Shown one piece after another: positions 14,102-60,100 of a DNA stretch of 64,000 nt (the first letter of the stretch is position 1; each line of letters begins with the position of its first letter). The notes below the pieces were generated by a model. The model searched no databases. It was not told where the DNA came from and saw only the letters and a list, made by a program, of their open reading frames with translations. Source of the stretch: Paragordius varius (lineage: Eukaryota; Animalia; Nematomorpha); assembly GCA_964247055.1 (NCBI GenBank), contig OZ176056.1, positions 2,418,001 to 2,482,000 on the forward strand. Reading direction: 5' to 3'. Position numbers and translations under genes: made by a program.

Positions 14102-17100
14102 ATGAGCAGGAATAGGATTGTCTACAAATCGGGCTATTTATTTACGCCTTCCTCGACTTTGTTGCGAGTAACCTTTTTATTCTATAAATTTTTAGAAAAC
14201 ATGGCAAAGAAAATGGTTTGTACTGCTAAAAGATTCTGCCAACGATGCCTTTAAATTGGAATGTTATGACAGCGAACGCCATTACGCTTTGGAACAGTTA
14301 ACCGCAAAAGGAAATCCTATTAAAACAAAAAAATCTCTTATTATTCGAGAAATCATATCTGTTAAAGATAGAAAAACGAAATCACGACCAATGGCGTTTG
14401 AACTTTTATCCAAAGAACATAAAAATATAAATAGCATTGTTGCATCTGCTGAAAACGAATTAGAGCACCATTCTTGGATAGAAACCCTAAAAAAATTACA
14501 AAATGAATTAATATTACCGTTAGGTGTTATTCCAAACGAATTTAAACCAAGCGATAATTTGAATATGGAAACGAATAATCCAAATCATTTAAATGGTAAT
14601 AAAGAAAATTATATTACACCATCCACGAATTTACGCTTCACAGGTAAATTTTTTATGATTAAATATTTTATAAGTCATTGGTTTTTACTTTTTATATTCA
14701 AACATATCTTATATTGCAGAAATACCATTTTTGGAACCTAAACCGTTAAATCTTGAGATTGGAAATAATGTCAATTCAAACAATAATGATAAAAATCACA
14801 GTGATAGCCTAAAAAATAAGTTAAATCCAACAGTTAATTCCAAATTATTAAACACTAACGTCAATTGTAACAATACCAATGGATTTTCCACACCAACACA
14901 TGATTTTATGGGTGAGCGGATAGACAGTAAGAGCCCATCTTTACAAGGCTTATCGTCTGCACCCCAAAATAATAACACCAATAATACGACATTTGAAGAA
15001 AATGAAAATTTAGTGTACAGTTCTGCCGAATTACGTAAGATTTGCAGATACATTAAATTTTTAATTTCTTTAAATTTAACGTATCAAATATCCTTATATA
15101 TTTGTAAATGGGTAATATATTCGAACCTAGGAAAGGGCGCAAAATTAGATGGTTGAACAGAAAAATTGAGTAATCCATGTGCAGTTACTTCCCTCTTTCA
15201 GGAGTCCGATTGTGGGCAAAATTTTTATGCGCATGCATCATGACGCTTTTTAAGAAAAATTGGAATTTTTAACTAAAACAGCACAAAATTTAATTTTATT
15301 GCTTTTGACTCTTTATTAATCCTTAAAATGCCTCATAGTTTGCGGGAAAGTAAACTTAAAACGATTAATAACTATATACTAGAACCTATTCAATAATCAG
15401 AAAACTGCATGGAGATTATCATGACCTCATTAGTTTATAGGCACTGTATATGTGAAAAAATCCCAATGGGGGCTTGGGTTTATTAGGGGATCCGCGCTGC
15501 ATTATAAATAATTTTCTCAATGAAAAAATTTTATAGTTAACAAACTTTACATTACATTACATATTTATATAGCTACTGGATATCGTGTATATGTTATACC
15601 AACTGATGCTTCTAAACGCTGTAATTTAATTTCATCCATGCCTAACAGTTCAAATAATTTGCATTATACCGAAAGCTTTTCTGGCATGAAAATGGATAAT
15701 TTCTCACCTGCTCAAAGTTTGCTATAAAATTTTATAAATAATTTTTTTCCAAAAAAATAAAAATTTGGATGTTTTTTAAAAAAAAATTTTTAGCTCTAAA
15801 TAAAGGACAACAACAGCCGATTGAAGATAAAAATGCTCCCTATTTCCTACTCGTTTCATCTCAAAGTTTATCCTTAAATCCGGTTCTTGAGAATGGAAAA
15901 CCTTCGAATCACACACTATACATTTGGCCTTATAGGTTAGATTTTTTGTAAATATTTTTATTTTTTCAAAAAATATTATTAATTTTAATTGATATTATGT
16001 AATTAATGACATTTATTTTATTTCGATTTGATATGATTTATATTTGATTGTAAATATTTTGATTGATTTTTTCTTTTATTCATGGAACAAAGAAGAAACC
16101 ACACAATTACAATTAATACAATAATAAAAATAGTACAGAGTTTAGTTTTAATTTTGTTAATTTATTGCACAATAAAACCGTTTTATTTTATAACATCAAA
16201 CTTTTTAACGTATAAATAGTAGGTTAATTAAAAACATTGTATATAACTTTTATTTTTATATCATATATTGATTAAAGATTGTAAATTTTTGTTTGATAAT
16301 ATTATGGAATTTCCGTTTTTTATTTATCGAACATTTAACTACTATATATAATTTATGTCTAACTTATTTTCTAGTTTTTCCGCTATTTTTTATTTTTAAT
16401 ATTCTAATAAAAATATTTTTGAATTATTATTAGCAAATTTGAGTTGAGTTAATATATAATATGTATTTGAGAATTAATATTATTGATTTGTAAAACAAAG
16501 AGAAAAGTATCAAATTGTTTTTGCTTTATATAAATAGCTATAACTTTGAATGTTTTCTAAATTTTTATAGATGCAACATAAATATATATAACTAATCAAT
16601 TTCCATGTTATTAGGTCAACATTTATACGTAAAACTAAACAGTTAAAACATATTATTTCAGTTGATTCTTTTTTGTTTTGTATTCTGGTTCAAATTTTTG
16701 CAAACTAATATATTTTTGATATTGAATTGAAATTAATAAAAAATTTTATGTAATAAGAATATTTTTTTAAAATGTGATTGAAAAATTGTATTGTGTTTGT
16801 TTATTATATGTGCTATTAAATACGGCATCGTTTTATAAATTCTCGTTTAACGTTTTTTTTATAAATATGGGCTGTTCTATACTAAACGAATGATTTAGGT
16901 CCAAAGAAACGGTTGTTTTGTTTTGGTCATTAAATATGAATTAATTTATGAGTTTTATTAATATTATTCTGAATAAATGATAAACGGAATTATATTTTAC
17001 ATAAAAATAGATTCAATTATATATTTAAAAATTTGTAAGGAAAATGCCTGAAGAATTTATTAAATTTTTTGGGTTTTTCTACATTTAGTCCTTATAAACT

Positions 17101-17580
17101 TTGATGAATCTATTTGCTCTATAATCTCATTTTCATGCAGACTTCTAGAAGTTTACTATTTGACCAGTTATTTTTTCAAATTTTTATGTTCTTATAAAAC
17201 TCTAACACCAGCATTCAATTGATTTCTTCAATCATGTGATAATAACGGTCTCTTGTTTAAAAATCTTAAATTTTTTTTAGGTAATGCAATAAGTATAATA
17301 TTAGCTGGTTTAAAAATTAAATAACTTTTTGGGATTTTTTGTGGGTCGCGTTTGTGTTTTTGAATATACGATTTTTCAGTCAAAATCAATTTTTTTAACC
17401 AAAAACCGCATTTTTAAATATATATCATTTTCAAGCCAACGCAACATTTTTTCTGTTGTCTTTGATTAAAAAATGTTGCGTTTGTATGAAAAAATGTTGC
17501 GTTTGCTTGAAAAATGGTATATAACATGAATAGAGACTGGATATGCCAAATTTATTAAAATAAGTAATTATGTATAAAAA

Positions 17581-17647
<67 letters not shown>

Positions 17648-20600
17648 GTTGATAACATCTCTAATTTTTTAAAAATGTAATATAGCATAAGTATGTTTGC
17701 CAAAGAACAAATGTTTAAAAGCAGAATTTACTTTATATAATGTCAAATAAAACCCTTAATTACATTAATTGCAAAAATATTTTATATTTTAGTCGTCGTT
17801 GATATAAACTGTGATTCAATAGAAATTTGTACAAAAAATGATAAAAATAAGTTTGTGGTGTTATTATTGATTTTAACTAAATAATAATTACTCGATTAAA
17901 ATATATATTTTTGAATCTAAATACAATTATGCTCCTTAAAATTTATCCATCAGAATTTTTATGTTTATGCGGGCATTGATTTTACCAAAGGCAATGATTT
18001 TCTTAGTGTGCTCTATACAAACTATACCTTTGACAAATCATTAAAAAATACGCCTCCTTACACTTTCTATAATCCCTGCTAAATGATAAAAAAATTGGTT
18101 TTTTTACGCCAATATATTCAAACTAATTTCAAATTCACCCTTAAACAATTCAAATTCACCCTCAAATAAAATATATGTTTTTAAATTAAATATTACCCAA
18201 TATTTTTATATATTTTTAAAAAAATAAAATTGTTTTTTTACATTTAAATAATACTGAAATAAATAATAAACTATGCCATAAAGATATATTTCTCATTAAT
18301 AATGAGTTATATTAGTTCGAAAACACATAATTTATTTTTAAGGGTGTTGAATTTGAATTGTTCAAGGGTGAATTTGAATTGTTTAAGGGTGAATTTGAAT
18401 TGTTCAAGGGTGAATTTGAATTGTGTAAGGGTGAATTTGAGCTGTAAATGGTATATATAAAACTAATTTTGAATTTATTTTAAATTAGATATATCCGTCG
18501 GTATGGCCGGAGTCGAAATGGTAAAGCTTTTACGTTTGAAGCTGGGCGGAAGTGTGAATCGGGTGAGGGTCTTTTCACCTTTAAAACCCCGCTAAATCTA
18601 GAGTTATTCCTCCAAGTTGCAGGCAACATGAAAGCACTTAAAGAAAAATTGGGTTTGGGTTTAAGTTCTGACCTTAATAGTCTTCAAAATATTGAACAAC
18701 TTGAAATTTTAACACAAGTCAAAACAAATGCTAATGAGGATAGTAACACGTTAAAAAGTAATCCTCAACAAGGAATATCTAATGGACAAACTGGGGTAGA
18801 AAATATAATTGGTGCAAAACCTCCTACTAATGTTTTTCCAAATGCGGGGAAGGAAATTGAAAATTGTAATATTAACACCGATGCAATGCAAATTAATGAA
18901 GGTTTGAATATTTAGTATTTTTTATTTTAAGTTTTTTGGAATTTCAATTTTTACTTTTAGGGTATGAAAATGTAAATATATAATTTTTTTTGGTGGGTGT
19001 AGATTAGAATTGAAAATATTTTTTTTTGAGTTAATAAAGATAATTCCAAGTTTTTTCGCAGTTTTCGATAAAATATATTTTTTTTGTTTTTTGTTAAAAT
19101 GTGCTTATAATACGCGATGCAAAAAATTGTTGATAATTGATAAAATATTTATTTTTCTTGTTTTTGTTAAAATTTGCTTATAATACGCGATGCAAAAATT
19201 GTTGGTAATAAAATCTTTAAACTTTAAATTTTTTATATAAATTAAAATTACTTTTTAATAATATAAAAAATATAAATTATATTTGTAGGACAATTAATAA
19301 TATCAGAGGCGTCTTCAACGTTTCACGATGATTTAGTTCAAGCCCTCAATAATTGTCAAATTACATGTTCCTCGCCTCCAAGTAAAATATTTTTTATAAT
19401 ATTTTTTTAATAAATTATAGTTTAATTTATAAAATATTAATAATTATTTTATGAAAATATTATAATTATCAATTTATAATTTTCTTAGCATTCTTAAAAA
19501 AGTTACTTTTTAAAAAGAGCATTCTTAAAAAAGTTGCTAACTTGAATGATATTTTGAAATTAAACGGAATTATAAATAAGATTTTATTATGATTAATTTT
19601 ATATATAAATGCGAAATTTTGTTCTATACTAACGTTAAAAAATAAACTTTAATATCGTTTTTTCCATTTTAACCCTGTTAGATAAAATTTTTGTTGATAA
19701 AACCTATTTTTGGGTAGTGTATGTTAGTTTTTGATGTAATTAAATATCTCCAATTTTATGGCATATTGCAAAAAAAATATTTTTGCTCTTATTTTAGCAA
19801 AACAACCTTTAGAAAATATAAAATTAGCCCTTAAAAAAGGCAACTAATATAAACTTATTGTTCTATAGCTTTTTCTAAAAAAACCAACTTTCTATATATC
19901 CATTTTAAGGGATAATATATAAATATTCATATATATTTTTACCTGTATTTTTTTACTCGTGTTTTTAGGGAAACAACAAACCTTAGTAGAAAATACTAAA
20001 TTATTAGCTTCTTCTCAAAACAACTCTGAAAAAACTACTTTGGAAATTATTAATATGAATGAAAATTCCAAAAACCTTCGAAATAATCATCAACATTTTT
20101 ACGATGAAATTAACTTGAATAATGGCGGGACTGAAGCGAAATCATCTCTAAACAATATTTCCCCTTCAAATAATTCAAATTTTTTAAACAACAACTTTAA
20201 TACTAATACATCGACGACTACGTATTCACAAGACCAAAATATTTACAGTGAATTGAATGATGTACAAAGTTTAAATTCGATTTCTCTTAATGAAACTAAA
20301 TCCGGTAATAAAATGCCTAAATTGAACAATAATTTATGCCAGGATATTACTACGAAAAACACTCTTAATACATCTTTAAATACACAACTGAGTGCTCAAA
20401 TATCACCCTCTAAAATACCGACCGTGGTTAAGAAAGGTTTTTTTAAAAGTTTTTTTTTTATATATCATTTACAGTTCAAATTCACCCTTTCGAACAATTC
20501 AAATTCACCCTGAAATTAATTATTTGTTTTTCAAGATTAAAAATTACATATGTTTTATAATATTTTTAAAAAATAAATTTTTTTCTAAAATTTGATATAA

Positions 20601-23600
20601 TACTGAAAAAAAAATAAATTATGCCATAAGAATATATTTTATACTAATGATGAGGTCATATCGCCCGAAAACACTTAATTTATTTTTAGGGTGAATTTGA
20701 ATTGTAAATGATATAGTTGATTATTTTATACATTAAAGAGTTTGTTTAATTTGGATTTTTTATTAATATCGTAACAAAATTTATTGATATTATATGGTTA
20801 ATAGGAAAATCATTTTAATTAAAGAGTTGATATTGTCAACATAAATAGTAAAAAAACTAATCTTTTTTTCAAATTGTAAACCCTTTGTTTGTTTTTTTTG
20901 AATTTTTTATATGTGGAATATTTAACCCTGAATTATATATTTACATGGGTATTATTTAAGAAAAATCAAGTATTAAATTTGTTTTTTTATTAATATTTCT
21001 CTTTATTAAAATACGATTTTTACTAAAAGAAACACAATTTTATAGTTTTCTTAGCAAGCCAAAATTATATAGTATATATATATATATATATATATATAAA
21101 TATATATTGAATAAAAATGAATATTCATTCTATTAGTTAATAAATAACTTTTTTTCATATATTTTTTTCATAAATTTTATAAGTGTTTCATCAACGGTAT
21201 AGAATTAAAAATTACGAAATAAATAAATCCATTTATATACCATTTACCGTTCAAATTCACCCTAAAAATAAATTGTGTTTTCGAACTAATATAACTCATT
21301 ATTAATACGAAATATATCTATATGGCATAATTTATTATTTTTTTAATATTTTAATTTAAATTTTAATTGAGGGTGAATTTGAAATGTTCAAGGGTGAATT
21401 TGAATTGTAAATGGTATATATATGGTTTTTTCTTTTTATAAAATATAAATTTAAATGCACTGTTGATAAAAATTATTAGTTTCTCCAACGGCAAGAAAAT
21501 CTTGTCCCATATCAGCTATAACGCCACGTATATCTATAAGAATACCTTCCCCTACACCACCCTTAAGCCCTAAAAACAATGTCATATTATTACAACAAAA
21601 AAATAACCCAAACTCAAATTTAACCCTAAATAATGGGGGGGCTTTTTCACAAAATTCCAATAATGGAAATAATTGTTTTTCAAATACTTCACCCTTGATT
21701 AGTATAAACGAAAATTCAAAACGTAAAAATCAATTGAATGGTAGTTTAGTTGATGAATACACTATACCTTATTATGAGGAATCGAAAAGCTGCAGTAAAA
21801 AATTTATATTTATTAAAAAATTCTAGTTTTTTTCATAAAATAATTTAAGTAAATGTAAATTGAGAAAAAAATACAAGTTTTTTTTGAATCATTTTTTTAG
21901 AATCAGAACGGTGGTTTTAAACACTTTTTATGTAAAATGTGATTGATCTTTATTTTATAGGTATATTATTTTATAAAACCTTTATTATATTTTTATATAT
22001 TTGTTTTTCGATTTTTAAAAGTAGTATATTTTTTATATATTTGTTTTTCGATTTAATTTAAAAGTAGTTTTCTTATAATAATACCCTTTAAAGTTTGTTG
22101 ATTATACTTTAAGGCTCTAAATTTACCTTATTCTAATTATCAATTGGGTTTTCTAAAATTATTCAACCAGCACGTTTTTTCAAGAAATATCCTTTAATAA
22201 TTTTATTTTAATGTTTTATAAATTTTTATCTTTTTTTTGGCTAAAAAAATAGATGATAATCCATTTAATTATACCGAACATGGCCAACAAGGAATGCAAG
22301 ATTTGACAGAAAACACAGTAGTGAATGAAGTTTTGGGTGAACTTAATAAAGTCTTAAACACTTATGCCACTGTCGGTAATTATTTTTGATTCTTTAAAAT
22401 TATATTTTTTCTTTTGAGAACGCATTTTTGTTTTGTTTTTCCATTGAAATTATTAATATACAGTGAATTTTCCTAAAATTACAGTCATGTGTCCTTTATT
22501 TTATTAAAAATTTATTTTTTCTTACGTTAAAAGGGTATAAATATTTGCTGGTAAAGAATGGAAAAAACAAGAGTTCCATGGTAATTTTTATAATTTTTTG
22601 ATGAATATGATATTGTTAATACCACAGTGCTCTTGTTTTTCCATTCTGTCAACAAAAATTTATACCCATTTAACGAAAGAAAATAAATTTTTGATAAAAT
22701 AAAGGATACATGACTGTACCCCCTTTATAATGAAAATCATTTCATATTTTGCTAGTTTTTGTTTAAAAATCATCGAAATCACAAAATAATATATGATATA
22801 CATCAATTTTAAACGATTATTGAAATTTTGGACTTGACTTTAAAATGCAAAAAGGGCTTCATAGTCAACATGCGAATAATTTAAACGTGTTTGTAATTTT
22901 AATAAATTTGTGTAAAATATAATTAAGGTTATATTTTATTGGAAAAAGGAGATATTATTCTAAATAATAAAATAAATTATATTTTGATTTGTCAAAAAGG
23001 GAAATTATTGTTCTCAAAAAAACAAGGTTTCCCAAAATTGGCTTATTATGACGAGTAAAGGGTTCCATTTTACTTTATATTTTGGATATTATTGCAACAT
23101 CAAATTTTATATAAGTTTTTAAAATTTTTTGAAATTAAATATTTTTTTAGATACTAACGGGCCAAAATCATTGGCTTTTAAAGAGTTTAGAAGAAAATCA
23201 AATTCTGTCGAACACCGTAAAAGCATTTTAAATGGGAACGGTGCAACTATTTTGGATAATTTAGCGAGTATTTTTTTTCAATACAGATTTTTAATTTTGC
23301 TGATATCGATTTTTAAATTATAGTTTTTGGGATAATATTTCAGTAAAAATTCCAAATACTTTTCAAAAGCAAATCATACTTTTTTAAATCCTAGTTTTTA
23401 CCATATAAATTAATTACGATTGTGAGATACATAATTGATAGTATCAATATAAAATCAATTAAAGCAATGATCTTTTTTATATATTTGTCTCTATATTTAT
23501 AAGTTTTGTCCGTATAATTTCAATTTTTACTGTAAATTAAATTTTATAAAGACAAAATAAGTAAAAAAATTATAAAGAAAACGATATTTATAAACCTTAT

Positions 23601-24417
23601 TTATTTTTTATATCATTTTGAGCTTACTAAATAAGGAATAAGTTATATAAATTGATGATGACTTAATTTTATAGGTATAATGCAAGGAAATATGTTGTAT
23701 TGTAAAAATAATTATGATTGATAAATATGTTTTTTTGAAACATTTACCCCGTAAAAATTAAATTGTAACTTTTTTATTTCTTTTCATTTTTTTGACTTAG
23801 AACATCCCTCTTTCAAAAATAATTTTCCGCCTTCTACCTGTTCTGATTCCATTAATGAAGTAAAAAATTTACCACCCTTTGTTAATTGCTCGTCTACGAT
23901 AACGCTTAAAAAGGGTTGCGAATCAGTACAAAAATACCCCAATAATACTTGTATGTATATAGATTTGGAGAATGTTTCGAATTCAAATTCACTCAATGAT
24001 TTTGAAAGCGTTAATGAACAGCAAAGGTATCACAAATTTGAATCCTTAAAACAAATGTATGAAAATCAACAACAAACTTTTTCAAATTCAAATACATCTC
24101 CTGTAACGTTAAAATCTCCAGGACCCAATAAAAATGGCATAAAAAACAGTTTTAACAACGCAAACCATGTCACTTATAATAATAATAGAAATTCTATGGT
24201 TATTTTACAATCAGATTCATTACGAAATCAAGAAAATTTGCAAGCAATTATTAATGACAACAAAAATATTAATGCAAATTCAAATGCGACTAATTCTTTG
24301 AACCGTCGAAATCCAACATTTAATAATAATTCTAATAATAATTCTGATATAAATTCAATGTCCACCCCATTGTATAGCCAAGTGGTTAAAAAACCACCCT
24401 TACCAGCCCAACATTAA
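14102..24417 (+). CDS. Dok: Dok-family docking protein: N-terminal PH domain, IRS-type PTB domain, long Asn/Ser-rich Tyr-motif tail, about 1038 aa
   Basis: Exons 14102-14167, 14196-14643, 14720-15034, 15794-15935, 18489-18901, 19289-19381, 19969-20436, 21480-21794, 22253-22375, 23151-23267, 23801-24417 (3117 nt, phases all consistent). PH: VYKSGYL...KTWQRKWFVL...[44 protein letters not shown]. Confidence 0.85.
17585..17644. repeat. (TA)n microsatellite, about 60 bp
   Basis: Uninterrupted TA run. Shorter runs occur near 10885, 21075, 24600, 47110 and 63055. Confidence 0.95.
18125..18454. mobile_element. MITE family A copy just upstream of Dok exon 5
   Basis: AATTCACCC left arm; right arm of GGGTGAATTTGAATTGTT units ending GTAAATGGTATA. 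Confidence 0.75.
20463..20714. mobile_element. MITE family A copy just downstream of Dok exon 7
   Basis: CATTTACAGTTCAAATTCACCC ... GGGTGAATTTGAATTGTAAATG. Confidence 0.75.
21237..21416. mobile_element. MITE family A copy upstream of Dok exon 8
   Basis: TA-flanked inverted termini TACCATTTAC / GTAAATGGTA. Confidence 0.75.
22480..22718. repeat. Long fold-back (MITE-like hairpin) in Dok intron 9
   Basis: TACAGTCATG(T)GTCCTTTATTTT... pairs with ...AAAATAAAGGATACATGACTGTA over about 100-nt arms. Confidence 0.7.
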
Positions 24418-41400: not shown

Positions 41401-44400
41401 AAGATTTTCCAAAGAAATTTAAATAATCTAAAATAGGAATAAAAATTCATATATTTGTATAAAACTTGTTATTAAATTAATCTTTAAAGTTGAGACAAAA
41501 GTAGCCTTAACTATTCTCCATAAGATAGTCAAATAATTATATATGGTTAAAAAATTTAAACTTTCGATTTAGTAATATAAATATTTCAGTTTTAAAAAGC
41601 GTTTTCCACTCAATAAAAATAAACGTTCTCCAATAACAATTCAAGGTAAAAAAATTTACCAATCCGGAAAATGTTTAAATTGACTTAAATGTTTCGTTCG
41701 ATTATTGATTTTCTTTTATTTGACTAAAAAAACGCTTTTTTGGGGTTTGAAAAAAAAGATATATAAAAACTGAATCAACTCTTTAATAAATTCTACCATT
41801 TTTATCATTCCTGTCATTATTACGATTGCGTTCAAAGTTAGGATTTTGTTTTTCATCAAACACATTTGGTAGGGGTGGAGGAAATGGGTTGTCCTTAACC
41901 ATTGTGGGGATATCATAAACCCCAGTTTTGGCCCAAATGCCTTGTTGACTGATGGGTATAAAACCTTTAAATCGATACATGGATTCTAAGCCCTTTGGCC
42001 AGGGTGTACAAAATTCTATAATAAAAAAGTATCGTGAAATTAAATATTGTTTTAGGATAAGTGTGAGATTTATATATATTTATATATATGTACATAAAAG
42101 AAAATTATTAAATTATTGATAACGATCTATAAAGAAAGATAGTATATCTATAAGATGCGTAATAAATTAATTAAACCCAGTATACCATTTATAGTTCAAA
42201 TTCACCCTTGAACAATTCAAATTCTCCCTAAAATAAATTAGGTGTTTTTTAAGATTAAAAATTACCTTTATTTTATTATATTTTTAAAATATAAAATTCT
42301 GTTTGAAATTAATATAATGCTGAAAAAATAAACTATGCCATAAAGATATATTTCATATTAATGATGAGTTATATTCTCCCGAAAATACATAATTTATTTT
42401 TAGGGTGAATTTGAATTGTTCAGGGGTGAATTTAAACTGTTAATGGTATATTAATGATTATACACAATGTAAATTGCAAATAAATAAATCATTTAAAATT
42501 ACAAAATCAAAACAATCATTTCGGTAATATTAATGTATAACTACATATTTGTATTATGTGTTATCATAATTTTTATTTATGCAAAAAAATCGCAAAATAG
42601 CAAATGAATTTAATGATAAAAAATTCAACCAGAAGAATCATACCTTATTAAGATTTCTTAACTACAATAATAATAGAATATTTAAGCCATGTTTAAGTGA
42701 ACAACCTTTGATTCCGATAGTTTTTTTTTTACTTAATCCTAATTTTTCAGAGCAACGCTTAGGTAAAATTAGTTATGACAAATTGATACAATAATATTTT
42801 ATTTTATATAAATGGATAGTCAGTTCGTAAACTAACTTTGAGGTTTAAATCAGATTCATATAATATTAATTAAGGTTAAACAGAGGTTCTTTACTTTTAG
42901 CGCAGCGCATTTTTTTAAAATCGTAGGAGTAATGTGGAAAATATTGGTTTCAAAATGCCATATAGTTAAAAGAAAATCCCAGAATTAGGATAATTTTAAA
43001 ACTATTCCACAACTTATTTTAATAAAACAGTCTCATATACTTTTTAAGGCAGCCCATTTCGCTTTATGTTTGGAATGGATGATAGAAAAAATTGGGTATT
43101 TTACATAAAATGACATAAAAATTTTATGTTAGCTTGAAAAATTCTGAAATTTACGTTTTATAATGCCATAAAAGTATAAAATTAATCTTTAACTCCAGTT
43201 TATATATTTTTAAGTTCAACACATTGCTTTTTTATGACACTAGGAATAGGATGGGAAACATTGGGTAAATTTTTTTAAAAAATATTAAAATATATCTAGC
43301 AAGATGATCTAGTTGATATAAATTTTTATGCTTTATTTTAAACCCTAAATGCACAGAATTTAACTTATTAAAACCAACATTGCTTTAAGGAGTATAAATA
43401 TAGCAAGATTTTGATAATAAAAGTTAGCATAAAAATTTCATATACTGACACTAAAACAAAAATTATATAGTTAACTGTAATTGATATACTCTCACTTTTT
43501 AACACAGCGCATTGTTCGTTGATCACGGTTGGGGTAGGATGGAAAAAATTTGGCAAATTTTTATAAAAAATATTAAAATATATAGCAAGATTTTGATATT
43601 TAAAAGTTAACATAAACTGACTAAAGCATACATTATAATTTAACTGTATTTTACTTTTTAGCGCAGCGCATTGTTCTTTGATCACTCTTGGGGTGAGATG
43701 GAAAAAATATTTTAGCATAAAAATTTTACGTTAGCTAGAAAATCCTGGAATCATTTAATGTCTAAGTATAAAATAATTCTTTAACTCCTCTTTATATTGC
43801 AGCACATTGCTTCTCGGTATATTTTTTAAAAAAAATATTAATATAGTATATCTAGCAACATTTTGATACATATAAAAGTTAACATAAAATTTTCATATAC
43901 CAACACTATATCATAAATTATATAGTTTGTAATTAATATAATCTCACTTTTTAGGGCAGCGCATTGTTCTTTGATCACGGTTGGGGTGAGATGGAAAAAA
44001 TTGGGTATTTTAGCATAAAAATTTTACGTTAGCTGGAAAATTCTGGAATCATTTAATGTTTAAGTAAAAAATTAATCTTTAACTCTTCTCTATATATTTT
44101 TTAATGCAGCACATTGATTCTTTAGCACACTAGGAAGATGGAAAAAATTTATATTTTTTTAAATATTAAAATATATATCTAGCAAGATGATCTTTAAAGT
44201 TGACATATTGCCTTAAAAATCTTTAACCCTAAATGCACAGCATTCTACTTTTAAAAGCAGTTCTTGCTTTAAGGAGTAAAAATAAAATTTTGACATTACA
44301 CTAACATAAATATATAGTTAACTGTAATTAATATAATCTCACTTTTTAACGCAGAGCATTGTTCTTTGATCACGGTTGGGGTGAGATGGAAAAAATTGGG

Positions 44401-45991
44401 TATTTTAGCAAGTTCCAAATTGCCAAACGCCACAGGTGAGGATTTAGACCGGGTCGCAGGCAAACCCTGTCTCACGGGTAACGGAATGACTGAAGCGTTA
44501 TAACTGTGAGCCATGGGCCAAACAGAACCCCAATCTTGATCGATAGGGGCACGTCGATTACGTGGCGGCATAATGTTTTGTTTCTATAGTTAATATAAAA
44601 AAAATTGAATTGGTTAGGCATATAAAAAATATATGACAGTAGTTTTAACTAGAACTTCGTTTATAAATTAAATTAAAGTAAATTAAACGTCAGAATTTGC
44701 TAAAATCAGCTTTTCGAGGAAATATGATATATTCAATATATCATCAAAGCTAATGATTTAAAAATTTAAAGTAACGAAATTGAGATTTTTTTGTTTTCCA
44801 ATTGCTTCTATTTTCCGTATCTTCTATTTTTAGTTTGATCCCAGTAAGGTCACCATATATATTACTGAGCCAGCTTTTAAAGGGCGTCCCAAGTTTTCAG
44901 CTCGGTTTAGAGTAAGACATCATTTTATGGATATAATTTTTTGGAGGTCAAGATGGATGTGAACAGCCCATTTAAGTCGTTTGGCTCTTTGAAAGGGTTA
45001 AGAGCAGAGATTTTAAGGATTGTAACGGGATCGAATCGATAATTAAAATTATAGAATTTAGGATTATGTCCAAAAAGAATTGTTTTGAGTATTTTGGATT
45101 CAGAGTTTTGAAATGTGCCAAGGTTAGACTTTGTCATAGGCCAGCATTCCGTGTCTTAGGTCATCTCCGCATGGATAAAAGAATATAGCTGCGATTACGT
45201 TTCAAGTTTGATGAATTTATTATTAATTATGTGTTTTAGTCGATGGTATTTTCCCATACAGATGACCTGTGTTTGAGGCCATAATTGATACCTACGTTGG
45301 CAATTAATTCATCGCCAAAACATTTGAAGTGGGTATCAGTTTTGTAATTTTAGTTATTAGAGAATGGGTTTATATTTGGTTCTGGAAGAGGTAAGTTATC
45401 GATGCAATTTGAGCAAGCGAAGTTATCTATCCCAAGTGATTTTAGATTGGTGCATTTTTAATGGATTCAGAAATTACATTGCAAACAATATAAAATTTGC
45501 CTTAACAGCTAGAGCGCAAATTCTACATGGGTACTTAATCGGCATTCTATTATCATACATTAATTTTGTTATGGTTGGATTAATTTTGGGAAAATATCTT
45601 TTTCAAGCATATCTCCATTTGTCAATAGATAGAAGGAGGTTGTCTTCAGATAAATTTTTTATCAAGATCATCTGCAAAGAGCTCCCAAAGTAAACTGCGA
45701 ATATTCTTTGTAATCCCATCAATTATAATAAGGTGTAAAAAATTATATAATTTCATCGAAAATAAAAATAATATAATATACAAGTATAAGAAAGTTATTT
45801 AAATTCATACCGTTTGTGACCGTCTTTTTGTTCTAACTTCATCACGTTGAACTCTTTTAAATTCTTCCACATCTTATATGATATTACTAACAATAAAATT
45901 TACTTATATCTTCTGGTTTATTATCATATCCTGTTAGTATTGAACGCTTAATATGTTTAAAATGATAGATTTTGATTTTTCTCTCAAACAT
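38461..45991 (-). CDS. MRPS35: Mitochondrial small-subunit ribosomal protein mS35, about 465 aa, with an approximately 100-aa insertion
   Basis: Exons 45904-45991, 45811-45872, 44343-44583, 41797-42015, 41138-41364, 40186-40368, 39003-39131, 38461-38709 (1398 nt, in frame). Motifs PPR...DQDWGSVWP, VIPLPVRQG, GNLELAKIPNFFHLTP, FCTPWP, YFPIEI...SGPDIR, CPTRQQNIDYAYYLLTALYFES, EYKERVHDLL. Confidence 0.92.
40545..40918. mobile_element. MITE family A copy in an MRPS35 intron
   Basis: TACCATTTAC / GTAAATGGTA termini, 21-nt subrepeats. Confidence 0.75.
42183..42448. mobile_element. MITE family A copy in MRPS35 intron 3
   Basis: TACCATTTATAGTTCAAATTCACCC ... GGGTGAATTTAAACTGTTAATGGTA. Confidence 0.75.
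42890..44410 (-). repeat. Complex tandem duplication of the 3' end of MRPS35 exon 3 plus donor and flanking intron
   Basis: Copies of the HLTPxVIKEQCAALK|GT block at about 43945-44014, 43652-43715 and 43492-43556, and a stub at 42891-42915. Intervening blocks also repeat (43300-43400 vs 44180-44280). Confidence 0.85.
44780..45720 (-). mobile_element. Decayed RTE-type LINE (3' part of RT) in MRPS35 intron 2
   Basis: Fragments WELFADDL, KYPCRIC, FKCFGD, TECWPMTK...ESKILKTI, GRPFKSW...EDTENRSNW, with multiple stops and frameshifts. Confidence 0.7.
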
Positions 45992-46027: not shown

Positions 46028-47107
46028 ATGTGCATAACACAGCATTCAAAAGTTAAACAGATGTCTGAAGAAAACTCGTTGAAATATTTACCAGTAGATT
46101 CTCCTTTATTTTGTCAATTCTTGTTGACAATTTTTTCTATCGTTTCATTAATTTTGCAATACATTCAAATTTATAAAACTATTTGGTGGTTACCCTTTTC
46201 ACATACCCCTTATGCATTGGTAAACTTGGCCATTAATGTTGTACTTTAGAATTTTTATTTAATGAACCCTTACGTTATAATATATTTGCTCTCTATATTA
46301 ATGGCTCCCTTTGTTATGGAATTTGCACGAAAAGTTGATCATTTTTGATATATAATATTTAGTTTATAAAAGATTATAAGAATTCACAGGCGTATTTTAT
46401 GGTTTGGTCACTTGCCCTAATACCCATTTTAAATTATTACTTCATAAGTTTCCAATTTGATGTAGTTCGGACCTTATTTATTCTATATCCGTATAAATTT
46501 TTTAAAGTTATAGGTGGATCCTTTTTGCATTATATAAATTGCTAAAAATATTGCTTCAGATGAAAAATATGGCAAAGTCTTTACACAGCACTACAAATTT
46601 CTTTAATCAAATCAAAATGATTATATTTTTATCGAATCAATCAAAAGTATAATCCATATAATTTTAGGTACCTTTTAATTTGAGTTCCGACATGTCGAAA
46701 ATTCAAGACTTTAAAGAATTTTTCAATAGCAACATTTCAAAAATGGTGTTTACTACATTGTATTACTCCTATCACGCTTGTTTTTTGCCATGTATCTTAA
46801 CGCCGGTATATATTATAAGATCTTTTTGTATAAAATATTATTTTGGAGATTTATATAAAAAAGTAAAAAGGGAGACTAATTTAATTAAGTTTGGCTTATT
46901 ATATCATAAAAATAAAATTAATAATTCGGTTTTATTCCAAAAAGCGAGATATTTAAACAATTCAATTTAATATTCCAGAAATCTTAATATTATGCTAATA
47001 TATTTATCACTTTAAATTAATATCAAAATTCTAAAAGTATGTTTTAGTATAAAATAAATTTCGTTTATACCATATTATATATAGTTATAAAAAATTTTAA
47101 CCAAATA

Positions 47108-47147
<40 letters not shown>

Positions 47148-50100
47148 ACATAAATATTTTAGCAGTATGAAAATAACCCAATTTATCATTTTTTATTGAC
47201 ACTAAAAAAATTATTTTTTTTCTAGAGTACCGTCAATTACTTTATCAGTGATGCCATATTAATTTTTACGGCTAGCACATTAACTATTACATCGATAGTT
47301 TTATTTGAAACTTTTTCCTACAATGGACCTCTGACTTCCACAGGCTATAAAATTTGTCAAAATATTCAGGCTTTGGATGGAACAAAGTATTATTAATTTT
47401 AGTAAATTATATATATTTAAAGTTATAAGGATAAGTTTTTTATTGTAATTTTAAACCATGTATTTCTTGAGAATATTTAAGTCCCTATTTATAAATTATA
47501 TAAATTATAGGATTAGATTATTAAAATGTGGATTATAAAACCCAAAACGGTTTATTTTATCTTATATACCACTTTTATTTCAAGTTGGTCCTTAAACACT
47601 TTAAGTTTGTCCTTCGACACTTCAAGTTGGTGCTTAGACTTTTTAAGTTTGAATTTGACCATTTGCATGTATTTTTTTCATTTTTTACCCAATTTTTTTA
47701 TTTTATTATATATATTTATTTATTAATATTTTTTAATTAAAAAAGTTTTGTTTCCAACTAATTTTTTCCAATTCAACAATATTATGCAACCATAAATGTT
47801 TTCGACAAAAAATTATAACTATTATAATCTAGAAAACTAATATTTTTTTTATTTACATGCTAAAATTATAAAATTAATATATTTTTTTAAGATCTAAATC
47901 AGCTATACGGTTAATTAAAAGTTGATATTGATTAAAAATGGTTAGAGCAAGAGAATTGGTTAAAAATTATAAAATATATGAATGATGCATGGTTTGATTG
48001 ATAATTAAAAATAAATTCAAAACGTTGAACAAACAACTTGAAGTGTTTAAGGACCAATTTGAAATCTTAATTGACCATGAATTGTTCAAGAACCAATTTG
48101 AAATGTTAAAGGACCAACTTGAATTGTTTAAGGACATCAAGTGTAAATACTACTATAAGCAATTTTTCCATCATCCTGTCAGCCGGTGAGTGTTATAACC
48201 TTCGCAAGTCTACAATTTAAGTCTTTACCCTTTAATAAAAAAAATGTAAAAAAGAACCCTAAACTGTATATTATACTATTCATATTAAACAAATTTATTA
48301 TAAAAAAAGATAAGCTTTGTTTTTCTATTTTTATGTCTTATCTTTTCAAATTTATTTTAATGTAGATTAAATATAGTTGATTCTTAGATGCCATATTTAA
48401 GAAAAATTTTAAAATATAAAATATTTATGCATTTTACCTTGGTTCGGAACTAATAAAGTTGTTTATTTGATTTAAATGATATATGATAAAAATTGGTTAA
48501 TAATTAATATTTGTTTTGATGACATTTGAAACAATAACCATCCTGAAAAAGGTCACGTATTTTTCTGCATTTTAATACCAGTATATATTGTTAATTTAGA
48601 TAAATAAAATATAAATTTTTGATTAATTTATACGGTAATCTTATATCTTAGTTTTAAAGCGTTCAAATATTTTTTAAAAAAAATATAATTGATATATTTT
48701 TAAAATCTAGAGAAAATAATACTTTCAATGATGCAAATATGGCTGAAATCGAGCTATTCAAACAAAGTTGGATATATGTAAGTATATTTAAAATTATATT
48801 CATTTTTTTCAAAGAGTTTTTAATTCGCTATAGAAAAAAATATTTTTATATGAAGGTATTTTTCTGTATTTTACACCTTTATTGATTTTTTGAAATATCG
48901 CTTCTGTAACGAATAAATTTTAGCTATAATCTTAATCCAAAAACAAATTAACAAATATATATATGATTGTATATTAAATGGAATTAATAAAGAGTAGTAT
49001 TATCTCACAATCTTATAAACTTGGTTAAAACATTTTTTTACTTTAATAACGTATGGTATGTAAGAAATTGTTTAACTATGACAATGGGTAATCTGTATTA
49101 TGTTAAAATTGGGATTTTTTTCCAGTTTTATGCTAGATATATGTCACCACTTATAAAATTCTCGCTTTTTATTAACCAACTAATTATATCATTAATAATA
49201 TATAATAAAAGTATGAATTATTAAAGTTGTTGAGATCTTAAAATCTAATTATATATCTAAATATTATAAACATATGAGCCAAGTTATATTGAAAGCGGTC
49301 ACATCCAGGAATGCATTCTAAGATAATTAAATCAACCTGTACATATAAAAGTTATGTCTTTTGGTGTGAAGAACGGTATCCCACAAAGGAGTAGTTAGAT
49401 TTATATATTTAGATTTTGTACGGCATGCAAATTTTAAAACATATAAAATGAGTAATTAGGCTAAAAACGTGCCTGTAACCATTTTAAAAAAATTATACTT
49501 TTTCATATCAGCAGTTCTATTTTTTAAAACAATTCTCGTTGTGTATAATAAAATTATTATATAATTAAACCATAAGTTTCTGCAAACATTTCTCTCCTTA
49601 TGGATGGATGATATTAGGCTCCATAATCGGAGTTTTGTATCCACCAAGTAATTTCCTACATAAATTACGATCTTTTCTGTAAAATACGTTGATTCAAGCC
49701 CATTTTTATATATCATTATAAGAAAAGAGTGGTCGTCCCTTTCTTTTATTGCCATCAACATTAATGTTTTCAACAGTTTTTATAGGATGGGTGGCGTCTC
49801 TTCTCTAAATATGACCGTAGAGAAGCAATCTATTAGTTTGAATGATATAATCGATTTTGTCGGTTTTTTTAATGAAAGTTGTATTTCTGGTGTACGAAAG
49901 CAGCTTTTGAGTATTCGGTTCTCACTGGTTAGGAGTTTTTGATTAGTTTTGTTTAACGCCCAGGTTTCAGAACCATAGGTAAGAGCAGGTCTTATTCCTG
50001 CCTTGTATAGATACCATTTATTACGATTGTTAACATTTTTGTTTTGGAAAACATATTTTAACTGATTGTATTTATCCAATCTTGTTGTATTCTTCTTTTG

Positions 50101-53055
50101 ATAGCCTTTTGTGGGCTTCCCTGGGATATAATGACATCACCTAGGTAAACAAAAGAGTCTACCAATTCGATGTAATATCCATCAATGTTAAGTAGCTTTG
50201 GTCGATTAAAATTATTATTACTTGGGTCTAAGCAATTTAAACATTTAAAACTTATTACATTTGTTAGTTTGTCTTTTATTTTAAAGCATTTGTGTATCCA
50301 CATTTGACATATATGCCTTACTGCAAACAGAACAGGGGTATCTGGGTGTTTCACTTTCGCTCGTTATCATTATTTTTGTTTTTGTGGCGTTTTTAATCAT
50401 TCCATATTGTTCAAGGCATTTCTTCCACTTGGTATAGTTGTTTATCAGTTGATCCCATGATCGTGTCGTTATCACGAGGTCGTCGGCGAATAACATTTCC
50501 CAAGGGCATTCAGTTCTTATGTCTTGCGTTGCCGCATCCATTATAGTTATAAAAAGGAGTGGACTTAGGACTGAACCCTGATGTAGTCCAGCGTTGGTTG
50601 GGAAATTGTTTGTATTGCCGATATTGGTTTTAGCGTTGGTTGTTGTATTTTTATAGAGTAATAATAAGATTTACGTAGTGCACATTGAATTGTGGAGCGT
50701 GGTATTTGCTCAAACGCACTTTCAGATCTACAAAGACATGGTATAGCTTTTGTTTCTTTTCCAGATATCTTTCTTGTAAGCGTCTTAGGACAAACAAGGG
50801 ATCTATTGTGCTACTGTTTGGACGGAATGTCTGATTCGAATCTATGTTTATATGTTTTCTCAGCCTGTTTTCTAATATATTTTCGAAAATTTTCAGTGTG
50901 TGTTCTAGTAGTTTTAAAGGTCTGTACGACGATGTTTTTAGTCGATCGCCTTTATTTTTATAAATGGAGATTATTATGCTGTTCTTCCAATCGCTGGGAG
51001 TTTGGTTTGTAATTATTATTTAGTTAAAGAGTTTTGTCAGATACTCTGCAGTGTTTTTGATGGGTCGAATGAAGTCGACTGAAAGGCTGCTTGGGCCTGG
51101 AGCTTTGTTACTTTTTAATTTATTGATTGCAGTTGTGACTTCATCCATGGTGATTTCTTGTATGGGACCATCTACTGGTGAAACCGTGCTAAATTGTTTG
51201 GTCGGGTTTACTTGGTTGAGTTGTTTTTCTGAATTCGTTTTCCAAATTTCTTTGACTTTCGAGGGATTCGTTATTATATTATAATTATCTTTATTACATT
51301 TTATGGTTGTAACATCTTTATTACTATTGTTAAGGTTTTTGAGTCTTTTAAAAATCGTTTGGTTTTAAAAGTCTTTTCCTAAACTTTCAGCGATTTTAAC
51401 GGATTTTTCATTCATAGCGTGTCGAATGGCCTTTTGGACCTCTTTTTAAGAAAAAAACCAACCGCATATAACATATAATTCTGGTGACCACTCATCTATG
51501 ATAGACTTAATATTAATTCCAAAAAACATTAGGAAACATCTAAAAAACATCAAAACTTACTATATCTCTTACCAACACAAGCTAATAACAGCATTTCTAA
51601 TCATTAAGAAAAGCCGTAAGACTGCATTCCAACCTCAAAAAATAAATATAACAAAGTTAAAGGATCCAAAATTATTAACCGAATATACCAAAAAAACAGA
51701 GTTACATATACACGAACAAAACAATGTTGAAACTCTATGGAAAAATTTTAAAAGCACAATTCCAACATCTGCCAAAAAACACTGCGGCTTTACTAAACCA
51801 ATGAGACAACGGAAAAGCTGGTGGTGGAAAAATGAAATAAAACCATTGTTGCGTGAAAAATAAGCATACAAAAAATGGAAAAGTTCCAAAAATAATGATG
51901 ATAAAAAAGTTTATGATGATAAAAAACGAGAGGTCCAAAAGGCCATTCGACACGCTATGAATAAAAAATCCGTTAAAATTGCTGAAAATTTAGAAAAAGA
52001 CTTTAAAAACCAAACGATTTTTAAAAGACTTAAAAACCTTAACAATAGTAATAAAGATGTTAAAACCATAAAATGTATTAAAGATGCGAATGATAATATA
52101 ATAACGAATCCCTCGAAAGTCAAAGAAATTTGGAAAATTCCTTATCCATGTAGAATTGTAATTAAAGAAATCGGTTTTAATAAAATATTTCTCATAAAGG
52201 CTATTTTGCACAAATATAAAGGTAAAAAGAATTGACTCATTCTATTAAAGTTGATCTGAATTTTAATGTAATAAAAAATATGTCTAATAAGAATATAGTT
52301 ATTTAAATGCCAATTATAACGGTCAGAAAACAATAAAAAAAAGATACGGAAAAAATGTAAAATATAAAAGGCATATATTTTTTTCTATACCTGTATAAAC
52401 TTTGTTTCAACATATATTATACAATCAAGATTATGATGAGGATGTTACCGTATTTCTATTTTTGATTTAAAAAATACGGTTGTTTAATACTATGCTTGGT
52501 TTTTAGGAGCGTGTGGTCCGTATAACATTTTTTACTAGTTATTAATATTAAAAAATCCACAAAGATAGGTTATAAAAAAATAGTTTTAAAACTATAGTTG
52601 ACTTATGCTTGTCTTTTAATATATTTAGTTTTAATCCGCATAATACCAATTTTAACTAACCGGTATAATTTATAGAAAATATTCACATCTAATGCCATAA
52701 AAAGACGAATTACATAAAAAAACACAAGATTTTAAAACTATGTATAGTTGTTTTTGTTCGTAAAATTTTATTTTAAATCAAAAAATATTTTTCTTTTTTT
52801 TGTATATAGAAAACATTCAACCGACCCAATCTGTGCCTAGGATATGTTTTAATATTTCATTACACCTGCATGGTTTTTATGATTGGTGCCATTATCTTTA
52901 ATCGACATTGGAATCGTGTGCTATCCCTGGGATTAATCCTATTTTGCAATTATTACCTAAACTTTAAAATGGTTAGAGAATTTATTGCTTTACAAAAGCT
53001 GTCCACATATTTGGATTCGAAACCATGTTGTTATACGGATAAAAAAATTGATTGA
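46028..53055 (+). CDS. TMEM39: TMEM39 family ER membrane protein, about 382 aa (start at 46028 or 46061)
   Basis: Exons 46028-46219, 46250-46333, 46363-46490, 46514-46646, 46668-46805, 47226-47386, 48711-48777, 52810-53055 (1149 nt, in frame). Motifs [58 protein letters not shown]. Exons 6-7 are less certain. Confidence 0.8.
47560..48150. repeat. Degenerate 21-nt-period inverted arms related to MITE family A in a TMEM39 intron
   Basis: TTCAAGTTGGTCCTTAAACAC-type units at about 47575-47665 and their reverse complements at about 48005-48145. Confidence 0.5.
49600..52136 (-). mobile_element. RTE-type LINE in the last TMEM39 intron: RT part on the minus strand (49600-51443) plus an inverted 5' segment on the plus strand (51444-52136)
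   Basis: Minus strand: FVDLKVRLS (FVDLEKAFD-like), [25 protein letters not shown]...WIHKC...[21 protein letters not shown]. Plus strand: [17 protein letters not shown] (APE C-terminus) and WWWKNEIK. Confidence 0.88.
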
Positions 53056-53143: not shown

Positions 53144-53537
53144 TTAAAATTGGATCATTTGTCCCTGAAATAATTAACAAAACAAATTTAACTTTTTTCT
53201 TTTTATCTCCACCAATTTCAAAATGTTTACAACGCTTAATTTTAAGTTGCTTCTTGACTTTACATTTAGTGCATTCCATTCTTAACACAATTTTTTTCGT
53301 TGTTTTTGCCTTAAAAATTTAAAAAATGCCAAACCTTTTTCCTGAAAATAGGTTTGGTTTGTCCACCATAACCTTTTTGTTTGCGATCATACCTCCTCCT
53401 ACCTTATCAGATTAAATAAAAAAATAACCTTGAGAATGGACATTTTCTTTCCCTTTTTTGTATTGGGTTATTTTCTGAACTGTATGGCATTTGCACTTTT
53501 GACAATAGGTCCTACGAGCTTTCGGCACATTAACCAT
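53144..53537 (-). CDS. RPL36A: 60S ribosomal protein eL42 (L36a/L44), 104 aa
   Basis: Exons 53429-53537, 53335-53402, 53193-53309, 53144-53164 give [12 protein letters not shown]...[35 protein letters not shown]...[21 protein letters not shown]. Introns are 26, 25 and 28 nt. Confidence 0.97.
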
Positions 53538-55558: not shown

Positions 55559-55867
55559 TACCATTTACAATTCAATTCAACAATTAAAATTCACCCTTAA
55601 ACAATTTAAATTCACCCTATAAATAAATTATGTGTTTTCGAAGTAATATAACTCATCATTAAAAAGAATATTTTTATGGCATAGTTTATTATTTTTTCAG
55701 TATTATATAAATTTTATACGTAATTTTATTTTTTAAAATATAAAAACGTTTTTAATCTAAAAAAAAGACATAAATTATTTTAGGGAGAATTTGAATTGTT
55801 TATGGGTGGATTTGTATTGTTTAAGGGTGTTTAATTGCTAAGGGTAAATTTGAACTGGTAAATGGTA
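55559..55867. mobile_element. MITE family A copy
   Basis: TACCATTTACAATTC ... GTAAATGGTA. Confidence 0.75.
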
Positions 55868-57113: not shown

Positions 57114-60100
57114 TTATAGGGGAAAATATAAAAAAACAGATAATAATAAGGATATAATAAATATGAGATTCGGGGTTATTTGTTGTAAGTTTATTGCATT
57201 ATTGATTATCGGTTCATAGCGCTTCCATACCTCAGCGTGATTGCCTATTCGCCTTGGATCAAAACATGAGGTCTCATTTTCATCTACATACACGTATCTA
57301 ATTTTTTTTTAAAAAAAATTATGACAATCGATAAATTTTATTTAACTGTTAAATTGAAAAAGTATACGGACAAAACGTGATTTTAACCTTGTTTTTTTAA
57401 AAAAAATTAAAATTACAATTGAAATTATAAAATTAATTGTGTTACCATAAATTATTGTATACTTTGCTTAAGTTTTGTTTTAAAAATCATGTATAAACGG
57501 TGGTTGTCTTTTAAAATAAAATTGCCAAAAAATTATGACAATCGATAAATTTAATTGTTTAACTGTAAAATTGAAAAAGTATAACGGACAAAACGTAATT
57601 TAAACCTTGATTTTTTTAAAATTAAAATTACAATAGAATTTATATATGATTGTGTTACCAATATAAAATTATGTTACATACTTTGCTTTTCATAACAATA
57701 AGTTTTAACTTAAAAAATCATTTTGGTGGTTGACTTTTAAATAAACTTGTCCTTTTTACTTTTTATCCGTATTTTTTTATATACAAATCATTTCTCTTTT
57801 AAATAGTCAAATTAAGTTATTTTTAAAATTTTTTTATATCATATAGTTTTGGTTCTTCAAGAACAGATTCGGTCACAATCCCTAATGAAGTGATGTTACC
57901 TGTTACGATTTAAGGCTCAAAAAATGGTAAAATATCTATTGATGAGTTTTTGTTACAAATGCTAATATATTTTAATATGGCTACACTTATTTTATAAGGA
58001 AAAAAATCTGTTTGGCATCAAACCATTATAGAACAGGCTTGTTTCCCAATATTCTTTTAAACTCATATCTTTACATATTATTGTGCTTATCTATTGGATT
58101 TATTTCTTTTAATCATGTGTTTTTGTGGAGTAAAAACTTGTTTAGTAGATATTGATCAACAGCTCGTATCATATAATTCTTTGCCTAATTCGGAGTTAAT
58201 ACATATTTTCCCTAAAAAATATATTTTAAATTTTGTAAAACAAAGTTTTACAGCTATAACCATAAAAAATATCTGTATTTTAAATATAAGGTTAGGAAAC
58301 GCTAAAAAATGGAGGAATCGTCATGTCATATGCTATCAAACAATGTTTTAATATTAAAAATAAGAAATTGAATTTTAATAGCAAAAAAAACCTAGAACCC
58401 CAAAGCGTATTGCACAAATGTTGAGCGTCCCTGTAGATTTCACCAAATTTTCGGCATTTATGATTGGAACACATTTGTCTATCGGTTAAAGCAAACATTT
58501 TCCGAAAGGCGAAATCGCCCAACCAATTCCCAGACTGAGTGCAGGATCGTTCAAAGAAACAAGAGGTATACCATTCCTCACAAAAGGATGAACAGAGCGG
58601 GACCTCTAAATATATACGTGGACAAATAAAATTGTACCCGAATTATACCAAATAATTTTTTTAGGAATAATATCAATGACATTAGGGTTAAAAAGTTGTA
58701 CTATCACCGTTTTTAAACTACATTTATCCATTTAAGTTTTATTTATTGAGCCCTAAATTTACTGTAATAATGTTTTGAATCTAGGGGTGTCCAATATGCC
58801 ACCCGCCGATAGATTATGTGCGGCCCGCAAAAAATCGGAGATCCATAATTTGTGAAAATATGCCGACGAAATCTTAGCAAAATTGAATATTTCATGACCA
58901 AATTTTTTGAAAAAGTCGTCGATGGCAACGTATTCGAAAAAATGTAAAATTGTGTTTGCATTTTACAGTCTTTGAATTCAATTAAAAATTTCTTACGGCC
59001 CATGCATATAGTAAAAATTAAAATTATACGGGTAAAACCAACAAATATACAGACAAAATAATTTTTTAAAAAACAACCATCTTTTTAAATCTTGATTATT
59101 TTCAATATAACTGATTATATCAATAGAAAATATATCAATTACAGATGTAAATAAGAGATGCCATCAATTTTATATATTACAGTGATAGGTAAACATTTTA
59201 TATAAGTAATATTAAGGTTTGAAAAAAGTATAATTGTCTTTTAAAAAAAAATATTTGTCTTTAAATTTTTACCTTTTGTCCGTATAATTTTAATTTTTAC
59301 TATATTTCAAATGCGGCCCACTTACCCTTTTGTGTTGGATTCCCCTGATTTAAACAATTAAAATTACTTTTTACATCCCCTTCTAGTGTACCAATCTTCC
59401 GCGGGTTTGAAACAACAAAGAATAGAGAAATATGGGGGGAACATTCATAAAAACATTCGAGATCAGCCATGATTGCATTACACCGAGGGCGCATATCTCC
59501 ACACAAATTCCAACGAATATAATTGTGAGATCGTATCTATTTTATTTGTCAAAATAAATTTTTATTTTCCCATCTTTTTACTTAATTTATTGTCCAAATT
59601 TATTATCAAGAATATAAAGTGCTCTTTTTTTATAATATTTAATTTATAATCCTATTTCATTTAAATGATGTGAATAGAACGAAAGTATTGCGATAAGGTT
59701 AAAATTTTTTATAACGAAACCGCATTCATAAAAATTATGCAGTAAAAAATTAAACGTATATTTAAAATACAATAAAAAGGTAAAAATAAAAGCTTTATAT
59801 ATTGAAATTATAAGAGCTATCTCATCTACCATCACATACGATAATATGTATATATAGATTCAGATCCAAGTCGATTTATAATTTCTTAAGCGGTTATGCC
59901 GGTTATATATTTTTTATCAGTGCAAAATAAAACCTTACTTACAACAATTAAAATGACAATTAAATATAATTAAAGTTTTTTGTCGCTCAACTAATTAAGT
60001 ACACAAAATATATGAACATTTCATTAATTTATCACAATCCTAACCCTAAAGATATAAAAAAGGGTAAAAAAGTGAATTTTTCATAAAAATACCAAGTCTT

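Follow-up and report, generated by a model that had tools for sequence, protein, structure and literature searches.

Predicted introns of 21–31 nucleotides near the starts of genes that also hold kilobase introns in the nematomorph Paragordius varius

How short can an animal intron be, and could introns of some twenty nucleotides (nt) be removed by the same machinery that removes introns of several kilobases? The question is raised by a 64 000-nt stretch of the genome of the nematomorph Paragordius varius (assembly GCA_964247055.1, contig OZ176056.1, positions 2,418,001 to 2,482,000), called here the window. An original prediction had placed ten introns of 21–31 nt there among much longer ones. 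We modelled six genes by hand, with boundaries fixed in scripts: OAT, Dok, MRPS35, TMEM39, RPL36A and an RfBP/folate-receptor-like gene (RfBP-like); the spliced models were compared with databases exon by exon, and the joined frames were translated only to look for stops. The 38 introns of these six genes, the long ones hand-modelled as well, make up the whole sample. Open frames resulted in all six genes after removal of GT-AG introns. Nine tiny introns of 21–31 nt were recovered exactly where they had been predicted, in four genes: Dok, MRPS35, TMEM39 and RPL36A (Table 1); the tenth, of 30 nt in the RfBP-like gene, turned out to be a mis-modelled transposon end.

Judged by their sequence context, the nine segments are almost certainly genuine spliceosomal introns. 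All nine have GT-AG termini, none shows a U12 donor consensus, and they are AT-rich (GC content 13–33%). Retention of a tiny intron would shift the frame in seven cases out of nine and introduce in-frame stops in two; as retention always gives a frameshift or a stop, splicing errors would enter nonsense-mediated decay. The proteins obtained after removal have plausible lengths: 104 amino acids for RPL36A (equal to the Gordionus protein), 371 for TMEM39, 1086 for Dok and 465 for MRPS35. Most of the nine (seven, spread over three genes) are shorter than 30 nt, and thus, as had been predicted, below the usual animal limit, which is quoted as ∼30 nt (PMC13644364).

Further evidence comes from intron position. 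Six of the nine tiny introns interrupt the orthologous codon in the same phase, either in RPL36A of Gordionus or in fish TMEM39A. GT has a frequency of 0.042 and AG one of 0.039, so that a single intron would show both at its fixed ends with a chance of 0.0016, and all six would with a chance of ∼2e-17. The basis of the other three is different: a PH profile for Dok, and the reading frame only for TMEM39 intron 4 and for MRPS35.

The Gordionus used here, Gordionus sp. m RMFG-2023 (Nematomorpha; GCA_954871325.2), was the nearest annotated relative found. It ranked first or joint first among 120 eL42 proteins for each RPL36A exon, and the IRS exon of Dok is 92% identical to Gordionus Dok. In both genomes Dok stands tail-to-tail with a short-chain dehydrogenase/reductase (SDR) gene; the C-terminal half of the SDR reading frame in the window had a single match among 5.8 billion proteins, and this was to Gordionus sp. 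m RMFG-2023 (32% identity). The SDR gene itself (26653–31027, minus strand) is carbonyl-reductase-like, fused to a long N-rich region and contained in one exon of ∼4.4 kb; its Gordionus ortholog is likewise a single exon, of 886 codons, with the same Dok neighbour.

In TMEM39, the first tiny intron matches in codon and phase a fish TMEM39A intron of 2844 nt, and the segment itself appears as a gap in the alignment. The exon before intron 2 has 28 codons both here and in fish. From the donor of intron 3 the alternative would be even shorter (17 nt). Intron 4 has no fish counterpart; other frame-keeping GT-AG pairs would cost at least 29 codons. The three long introns that follow (introns 5, 6 and 7; 420, 1324 and 4032 nt) have positions and phases in common with fish TMEM39A. 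The prediction that tiny and kilobase introns occur within one gene was thus borne out, e.g. by TMEM39 with introns of 21–30 nt plus one of 4032 nt.

In RPL36A, the exons flanking the 25-nt intron meet at Pfam L44 positions 43/44. Over 102 codons the gene differs from its Gordionus ortholog by 35 synonymous and seven amino-acid codon differences, and is therefore under purifying selection. The intron that in Gordionus directly follows the ATG (39 nt) is missing from the gene in the window. A 20-nt GT-AG stretch at 53542–53561 (minus strand) was not counted as an intron: aligned by eye, it corresponds to a pyrimidine start motif of Gordionus. Ending 4 nt before the RPL36A ATG, it may be a pyrimidine-rich start motif, a micro-intron of the 5′ untranslated region (UTR) or a trans-splice acceptor. 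In four of five genes, OAT (2912), MRPS35, TMEM39 and RPL36A, the start codon is also preceded by an acceptor-like AG at a distance of no more than ∼10 nt, which may reflect trans-splicing or introns in the 5′ UTR; for OAT a candidate 5′ UTR intron of 94 nt was seen at 2819–2912.

For Dok intron 1, Pfam PH position 17 coincides with the start of exon 2, and exon 1 (22 amino acids) can cover positions 1–16. The sole near alternative, a 49-nt version of this intron, was rejected, as it would remove a conserved KTW motif. MRPS35 intron 1 is the least firmly placed of the nine, since in-frame acceptors would also give 40 or 52 nt; with 31 nt removed, the length of the N-terminus matches mammalian mS35 (residue 53 versus 51–53), and from the sequence the 31-nt version is probable. 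The 3′ end of MRPS35 exon 3, donor included, recurs in intron 3 (43300–44342, minus strand) as a tandem series of three or more decayed copies, located near 43994, 43701 and 43542.

The segment that failed, 59345–59374 (minus strand) of the RfBP-like gene, is in frame and free of stops when retained, and lies inside an intron of 786 nt (58606–59391). A donor at 59391, 17 nt upstream, connects in frame to the next real exon as this single intron. With this donor two conserved blocks are 11 residues apart (Pfam positions 83 to 93); the spacing is 12 in chicken RfBP and would be 23 in the 30-nt model. Moreover, a terminal repeat, that of a hAT-like miniature inverted-repeat transposable element (MITE), makes up the 19-nt exon that the 30-nt model requires.

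One could suppose from this case that none of the segments is an intron, and that errors of assembly, inserted pseudogenes or coding sequence that is read through have been mistaken for introns. That holds for one segment of the ten, and the lack of a fish counterpart for the 21-nt TMEM39 intron also speaks for it. For the nine as a set we consider it extremely improbable: GT and AG fall exactly at six ancestral sites, RPL36A is a selected gene, and the segments are low in GC and contain stops.

Table 1. Modelled genes, introns and repeats, with positions in the window
Feature	Position	Strand	Description
OAT intron 6	7656..10482	+	2827 nt; remnant of a long interspersed nuclear element (LINE) reverse transcriptase (RVT_1 match)
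Dok gene	14102..24417	+	11 introns: 28, 76, 538, 77, then 387–2553 nt
Dok intron 1	14168..14195	+	28 nt, phase 0, within PH domain
Dok intron 2	14644..14719	+	76 nt
Dok, further intron	15717..15793	+	77 nt
MRPS35 gene	38461..45991	-	7 introns: 31, then 293–2327 nt
MRPS35 intron 1	45873..45903	-	31 nt, phase 1; stops on retention; acceptor without homology support
TMEM39 gene	46061..53055	+	7 introns: 30, 29, 23, 21, 420, 1324, 4032 nt
TMEM39 intron 1	46220..46249	+	30 nt, phase 0, in-frame stop; no nearby alternative GT-AG pair
TMEM39 intron 2	46334..46362	+	29 nt, phase 0; fish intron in same phase
TMEM39 intron 3	46491..46513	+	23 nt, phase 2; fish intron of 1161 nt at same codon (Y-P) and phase
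TMEM39 intron 4	46647..46667	+	21 nt, phase 0, three in-frame stops
TMEM39 intron 7	48778..52809	+	4032 nt; LINE reverse-transcriptase remnants; fish intron at same position and phase
RPL36A (eL42) gene	53144..53537	-	three tiny introns
RPL36A intron	53403..53428	-	26 nt, phase 1; Gordionus 136 nt at same codon and phase
RPL36A intron	53310..53334	-	25 nt, phase 0; Gordionus 41 nt at same site
RPL36A intron	53165..53192	-	28 nt, phase 0; Gordionus 43 nt at same site
hAT-like MITE	58782..59347		termini match element end at 7105; flanked by an imperfect 8-bp duplication (5/8)
Palindromic MITE-like copies	about 18120–18460, 20460–20710, 21240–21410, 26280–26580, 40545–40920, 42200–42450, 55555–55870		by eye

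After the RfBP-like correction the 38 introns fall into nine of 21–31 nt, two of 76–77 nt and 27 of 293–4032 nt. No intron has 32–75 nt, in agreement with the original prediction, and none has 78–292 nt. Two components described the lengths better than one (Bayesian information criterion 132 versus 155, computed before the correction). Tiny introns make up 9/38 and the median of the 29 longer ones is 726 nt, so the window is not one of mostly <30-nt introns. The only introns longer than 31 nt and shorter than 293 nt are those of 76 and 77 nt in Dok; going by the length distribution, they possibly represent a second short mode, comparable to the flatworm pairs of 36/73 and 37/90 nt.

We saw a strict preference of the tiny class for the 5′ end, which the original prediction did not contain. 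Each of the nine belongs to the first introns of its gene and lies no more than 586 nt from the ATG. Of the 12 introns that lie no farther than 600 nt from the ATG, nine are tiny; of the 26 more distant ones, none is (Fisher P 1.3e-6); permutation of ranks within genes gave P ∼4e-4 (post hoc). The coding region of OAT contains no tiny intron.

The long introns had been described as filled with transposable elements. This was confirmed in part: 15 of the 27 carry repeats with further copies in the window, and RVT_1 matched within two long introns, intron 6 of OAT and intron 7 of TMEM39; the repeats account for 21% of long-intron bases, or 34% with the reverse-transcriptase remnants, both values being lower bounds. 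By eye, introns and intergenic DNA contain many copies of one MITE-like family, which is palindromic and built internally of short tandem units. The LINE remnant in intron 6 of OAT itself holds a long fold-back insertion at about 9190–9840.

Gene spacing is tight around the tiny introns. The start codons of MRPS35 and TMEM39 are head-to-head with 69 nt between them (45991–46061), a gap that is a minimal bidirectional promoter in a repeat-rich genome. The spacing would be smaller if counted from an ATG that lies upstream and in frame near 46028. The stop codons of TMEM39 and RPL36A are tail-to-tail, 88 nt apart (53055–53144), and the UTRs of these two genes probably overlap.

The 5′ clustering might then have nothing to do with splicing. 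The introns would be real, promoter DNA would have been kept compact by deletion bias and free of transposons, and nearly all distal ancestral introns would have been hit by insertions; an intron of 25 nt would then be equally spliceable anywhere in a transcript. The short intergenic DNA of 69 and 88 nt in this region, the repeat share of at least 21–34% in long introns, and the 5′ clustering known also from flukes, Gyrodactylus and Oxytricha all speak for this account. However, 25 nt offer little room for an insertion to hit, and all the same not one of the 26 distal introns has stayed tiny; in addition, donor strength differs between the two classes. We regard such a purely mutational origin as possible but doubtful.

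The difference in donors is as follows. A G at −1 or +5 was present in 3/9 tiny and 24/29 longer introns (P 0.009, post hoc), and at +5 alone in 1/9 and 9/29, i.e. the tiny introns have a reduced donor consensus. At the acceptor, T at −4 was found in 8/9 tiny and 14/29 longer introns (P 0.05), the tiny acceptors tending to a short T-run. The comparison of signals revealed no motif that only tiny introns have. The Rfam scan of the whole window gave no family at gathering score, and no small nuclear RNA (snRNA) or splicing-factor gene is present in the window.

These observations bear on the idea of two recognition modes put forward in the original prediction. In its strong form, a dedicated tiny-intron pathway (a variant U1/U6, altered CWC25/ISY1/YJU2 or a U2AF-independent route) would operate beside a conventional spliceosome. 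The sharp gap in size would fit, and there is a precedent in Stentor, where introns have 15–16 nt and CWC25 and ISY1 have changed ends near the active site (PMC9505925). On the other hand, we saw no tiny-class-specific motif, and in myxobolids short and long introns have equally reduced signals with canonical U2 and U2AF (PMC13644364). Dedicated machinery is possible and the window lends it no support; we think such a pathway quite unlikely.

Instead, we find it reasonably probable that the tiny segments are real introns of the U2 type, most of them ancestral, whose short mode was lowered to ∼21–31 nt from ∼40 nt as in Gordionus, handled by one ordinary spliceosome, with weak donors linked to position and with distal introns enlarged by transposable elements. 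Three of the four Gordionus RPL36A introns have 39–43 nt, which counts in favour of a lowered short mode. Position, phase, GT-AG termini, need for removal and 5′ clustering were observed; one major spliceosome for both classes is our inference. In the simplest account the same U2 machinery would excise tiny and long introns, its size floor being lowered. Tiny introns would be defined across the intron, the donor being bound by U1 or U6 and an A ∼7–14 nt from the end by U2; the lariat loop would be only ∼14–19 nt, with a short T-run preceding AG. In the 21-nt TMEM39 intron the candidate branch A is 7 nt from the end and the loop would be ∼14 nt, a size between the 10 nt of Stentor (PMC9505925) and that of ordinary introns. 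Weak donors might be tolerated in tiny introns because donor and acceptor are so near each other and because both lie close to the cap or promoter, which assists the loading of U1; weak cap-proximal donors and aid to U1 from the cap-binding complex have been described in Drosophila, human and yeast (PMC4889658). Gene-distal introns would have grown by MITE and LINE insertions and would have stronger donors, like long introns in other invertebrates.

Several observations do not sit well with this explanation. Branch-point-like TRAY was found in 7/10 segments, not above the shuffled expectation (P 0.15). Some introns close to the promoter are long: intron 1 of OAT has 1422 nt and intron 2 of MRPS35 has 1227 nt. 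The cap effect was reported for the first intron only (PMC4889658), whereas TMEM39 has four consecutive tiny introns extending to 586 nt. The microintron sites of Opisthorchis are nearer to the consensus than those of its long introns; the tiny donors here are weaker. Finally, 38 introns in six genes is a small sample.

A further version would make position decisive. The lineage would splice introns below ∼30 nt only in the promoter- or cap-coupled first ∼600 nt of a gene, through a modified state of the spliceosome, and distal introns in the ordinary way. We think this version unlikely. If true, the intron size floor would vary with the place in the gene, and the comparison with Gordionus (∼40 nt) would help to locate the changes behind the animal size floor.

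Two more features of the window were noted by eye: a putative final exon (876–1115, plus strand) of a gene that begins before the window and is cysteine-rich and glutaredoxin-domain-like, and a candidate decayed remnant of a mariner-like transposase upstream of the SDR exons (about 32550–33800).

Short and long intron classes in one gene are common among animals, and neither tiny size nor bimodality is new by itself; what would be new is a third, ecdysozoan lineage with introns under 30 nt. In a survey of 51 animal genomes (2026) introns of <30 nt occurred only in myxobolids and Dicyema, and further cases were predicted (PMC13644364). The case described here would be the third independent animal lineage, the first found in Ecdysozoa, and one in a non-compact genome; as the genome is not compact, shrinkage of the short mode would be separable from genome reduction. 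The ∼40-nt introns of Gordionus at shared sites offer a natural before-and-after pair for locating changes in snRNAs or proteins. There is a practical consequence as well: default minimum intron sizes in gene finders and read aligners will break essential genes, e.g. RPL36A, in this genome. A literature search, which left most subscription journals outside, found no report of tiny, 5′-clustered introns combined with kilobase ones in an ecdysozoan whose relative has introns of ∼40 nt, and in the nematomorph genome preprints searched the word ‘intron’ was absent.

Gordionus shares the intron positions of RPL36A, the Dok-SDR synteny and an AT-rich, repeat-rich genome. It differs in that the short introns observed in it have 39–43 nt, its RPL36A has the extra post-ATG intron, and its SDR is only 32% identical.

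In Schistosoma mansoni small 5′ and kilobase 3′ introns were reportedly described in the genome paper. In Opisthorchis felineus, which has a large genome, intron lengths peak at 37 nt, 90 nt and 3 kb, and the short mode is clustered in adjacent runs at the 5′ end (PMC6530080); the modes of Gyrodactylus are 32/58 nt, with shorter introns at intron positions 1–2 (PMC4040987), and those of Taenia 36/73 nt (PMC5036155). As in Opisthorchis, the short introns of the window are adjacent at 5′ ends with kilobase introns downstream. However, the short mode of Opisthorchis, Gyrodactylus and Taenia is 32–37 nt and that here is ∼28 nt, the lineage is unrelated, and in Taenia the short mode was reported as 3′-biased (PMC5036155), not 5′ as here. 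Ciliates have introns of similar size (Paramecium ∼25 nt, Stentor 15–16 nt; PMC5014332, PMC9505925) whose retention likewise leads to a frameshift or stop; they have tiny introns only, while here the same genes hold kilobase introns as well.

Among animals, the myxobolid myxozoans are a second precedent that the original prediction left out; they splice introns of 20–27 nt with conserved U2 and U2AF (PMC13644364). Myxobolids and Dicyema resemble the present case in several respects (PMC13644364; PMC6543705): (i) GT-AG introns of 21–31 nt at conserved positions; (ii) longer introns in addition; (iii) donors with little beyond GT plus A/T; (iv) a parasitic animal. In both of them, however, the tiny class is the majority (median 22–27 nt) and the genome is compact, whereas in the window it makes up about a quarter of introns (9/38), is confined to 5′ ends, keeps a short T-run at the acceptor and belongs to a repeat-rich ecdysozoan.

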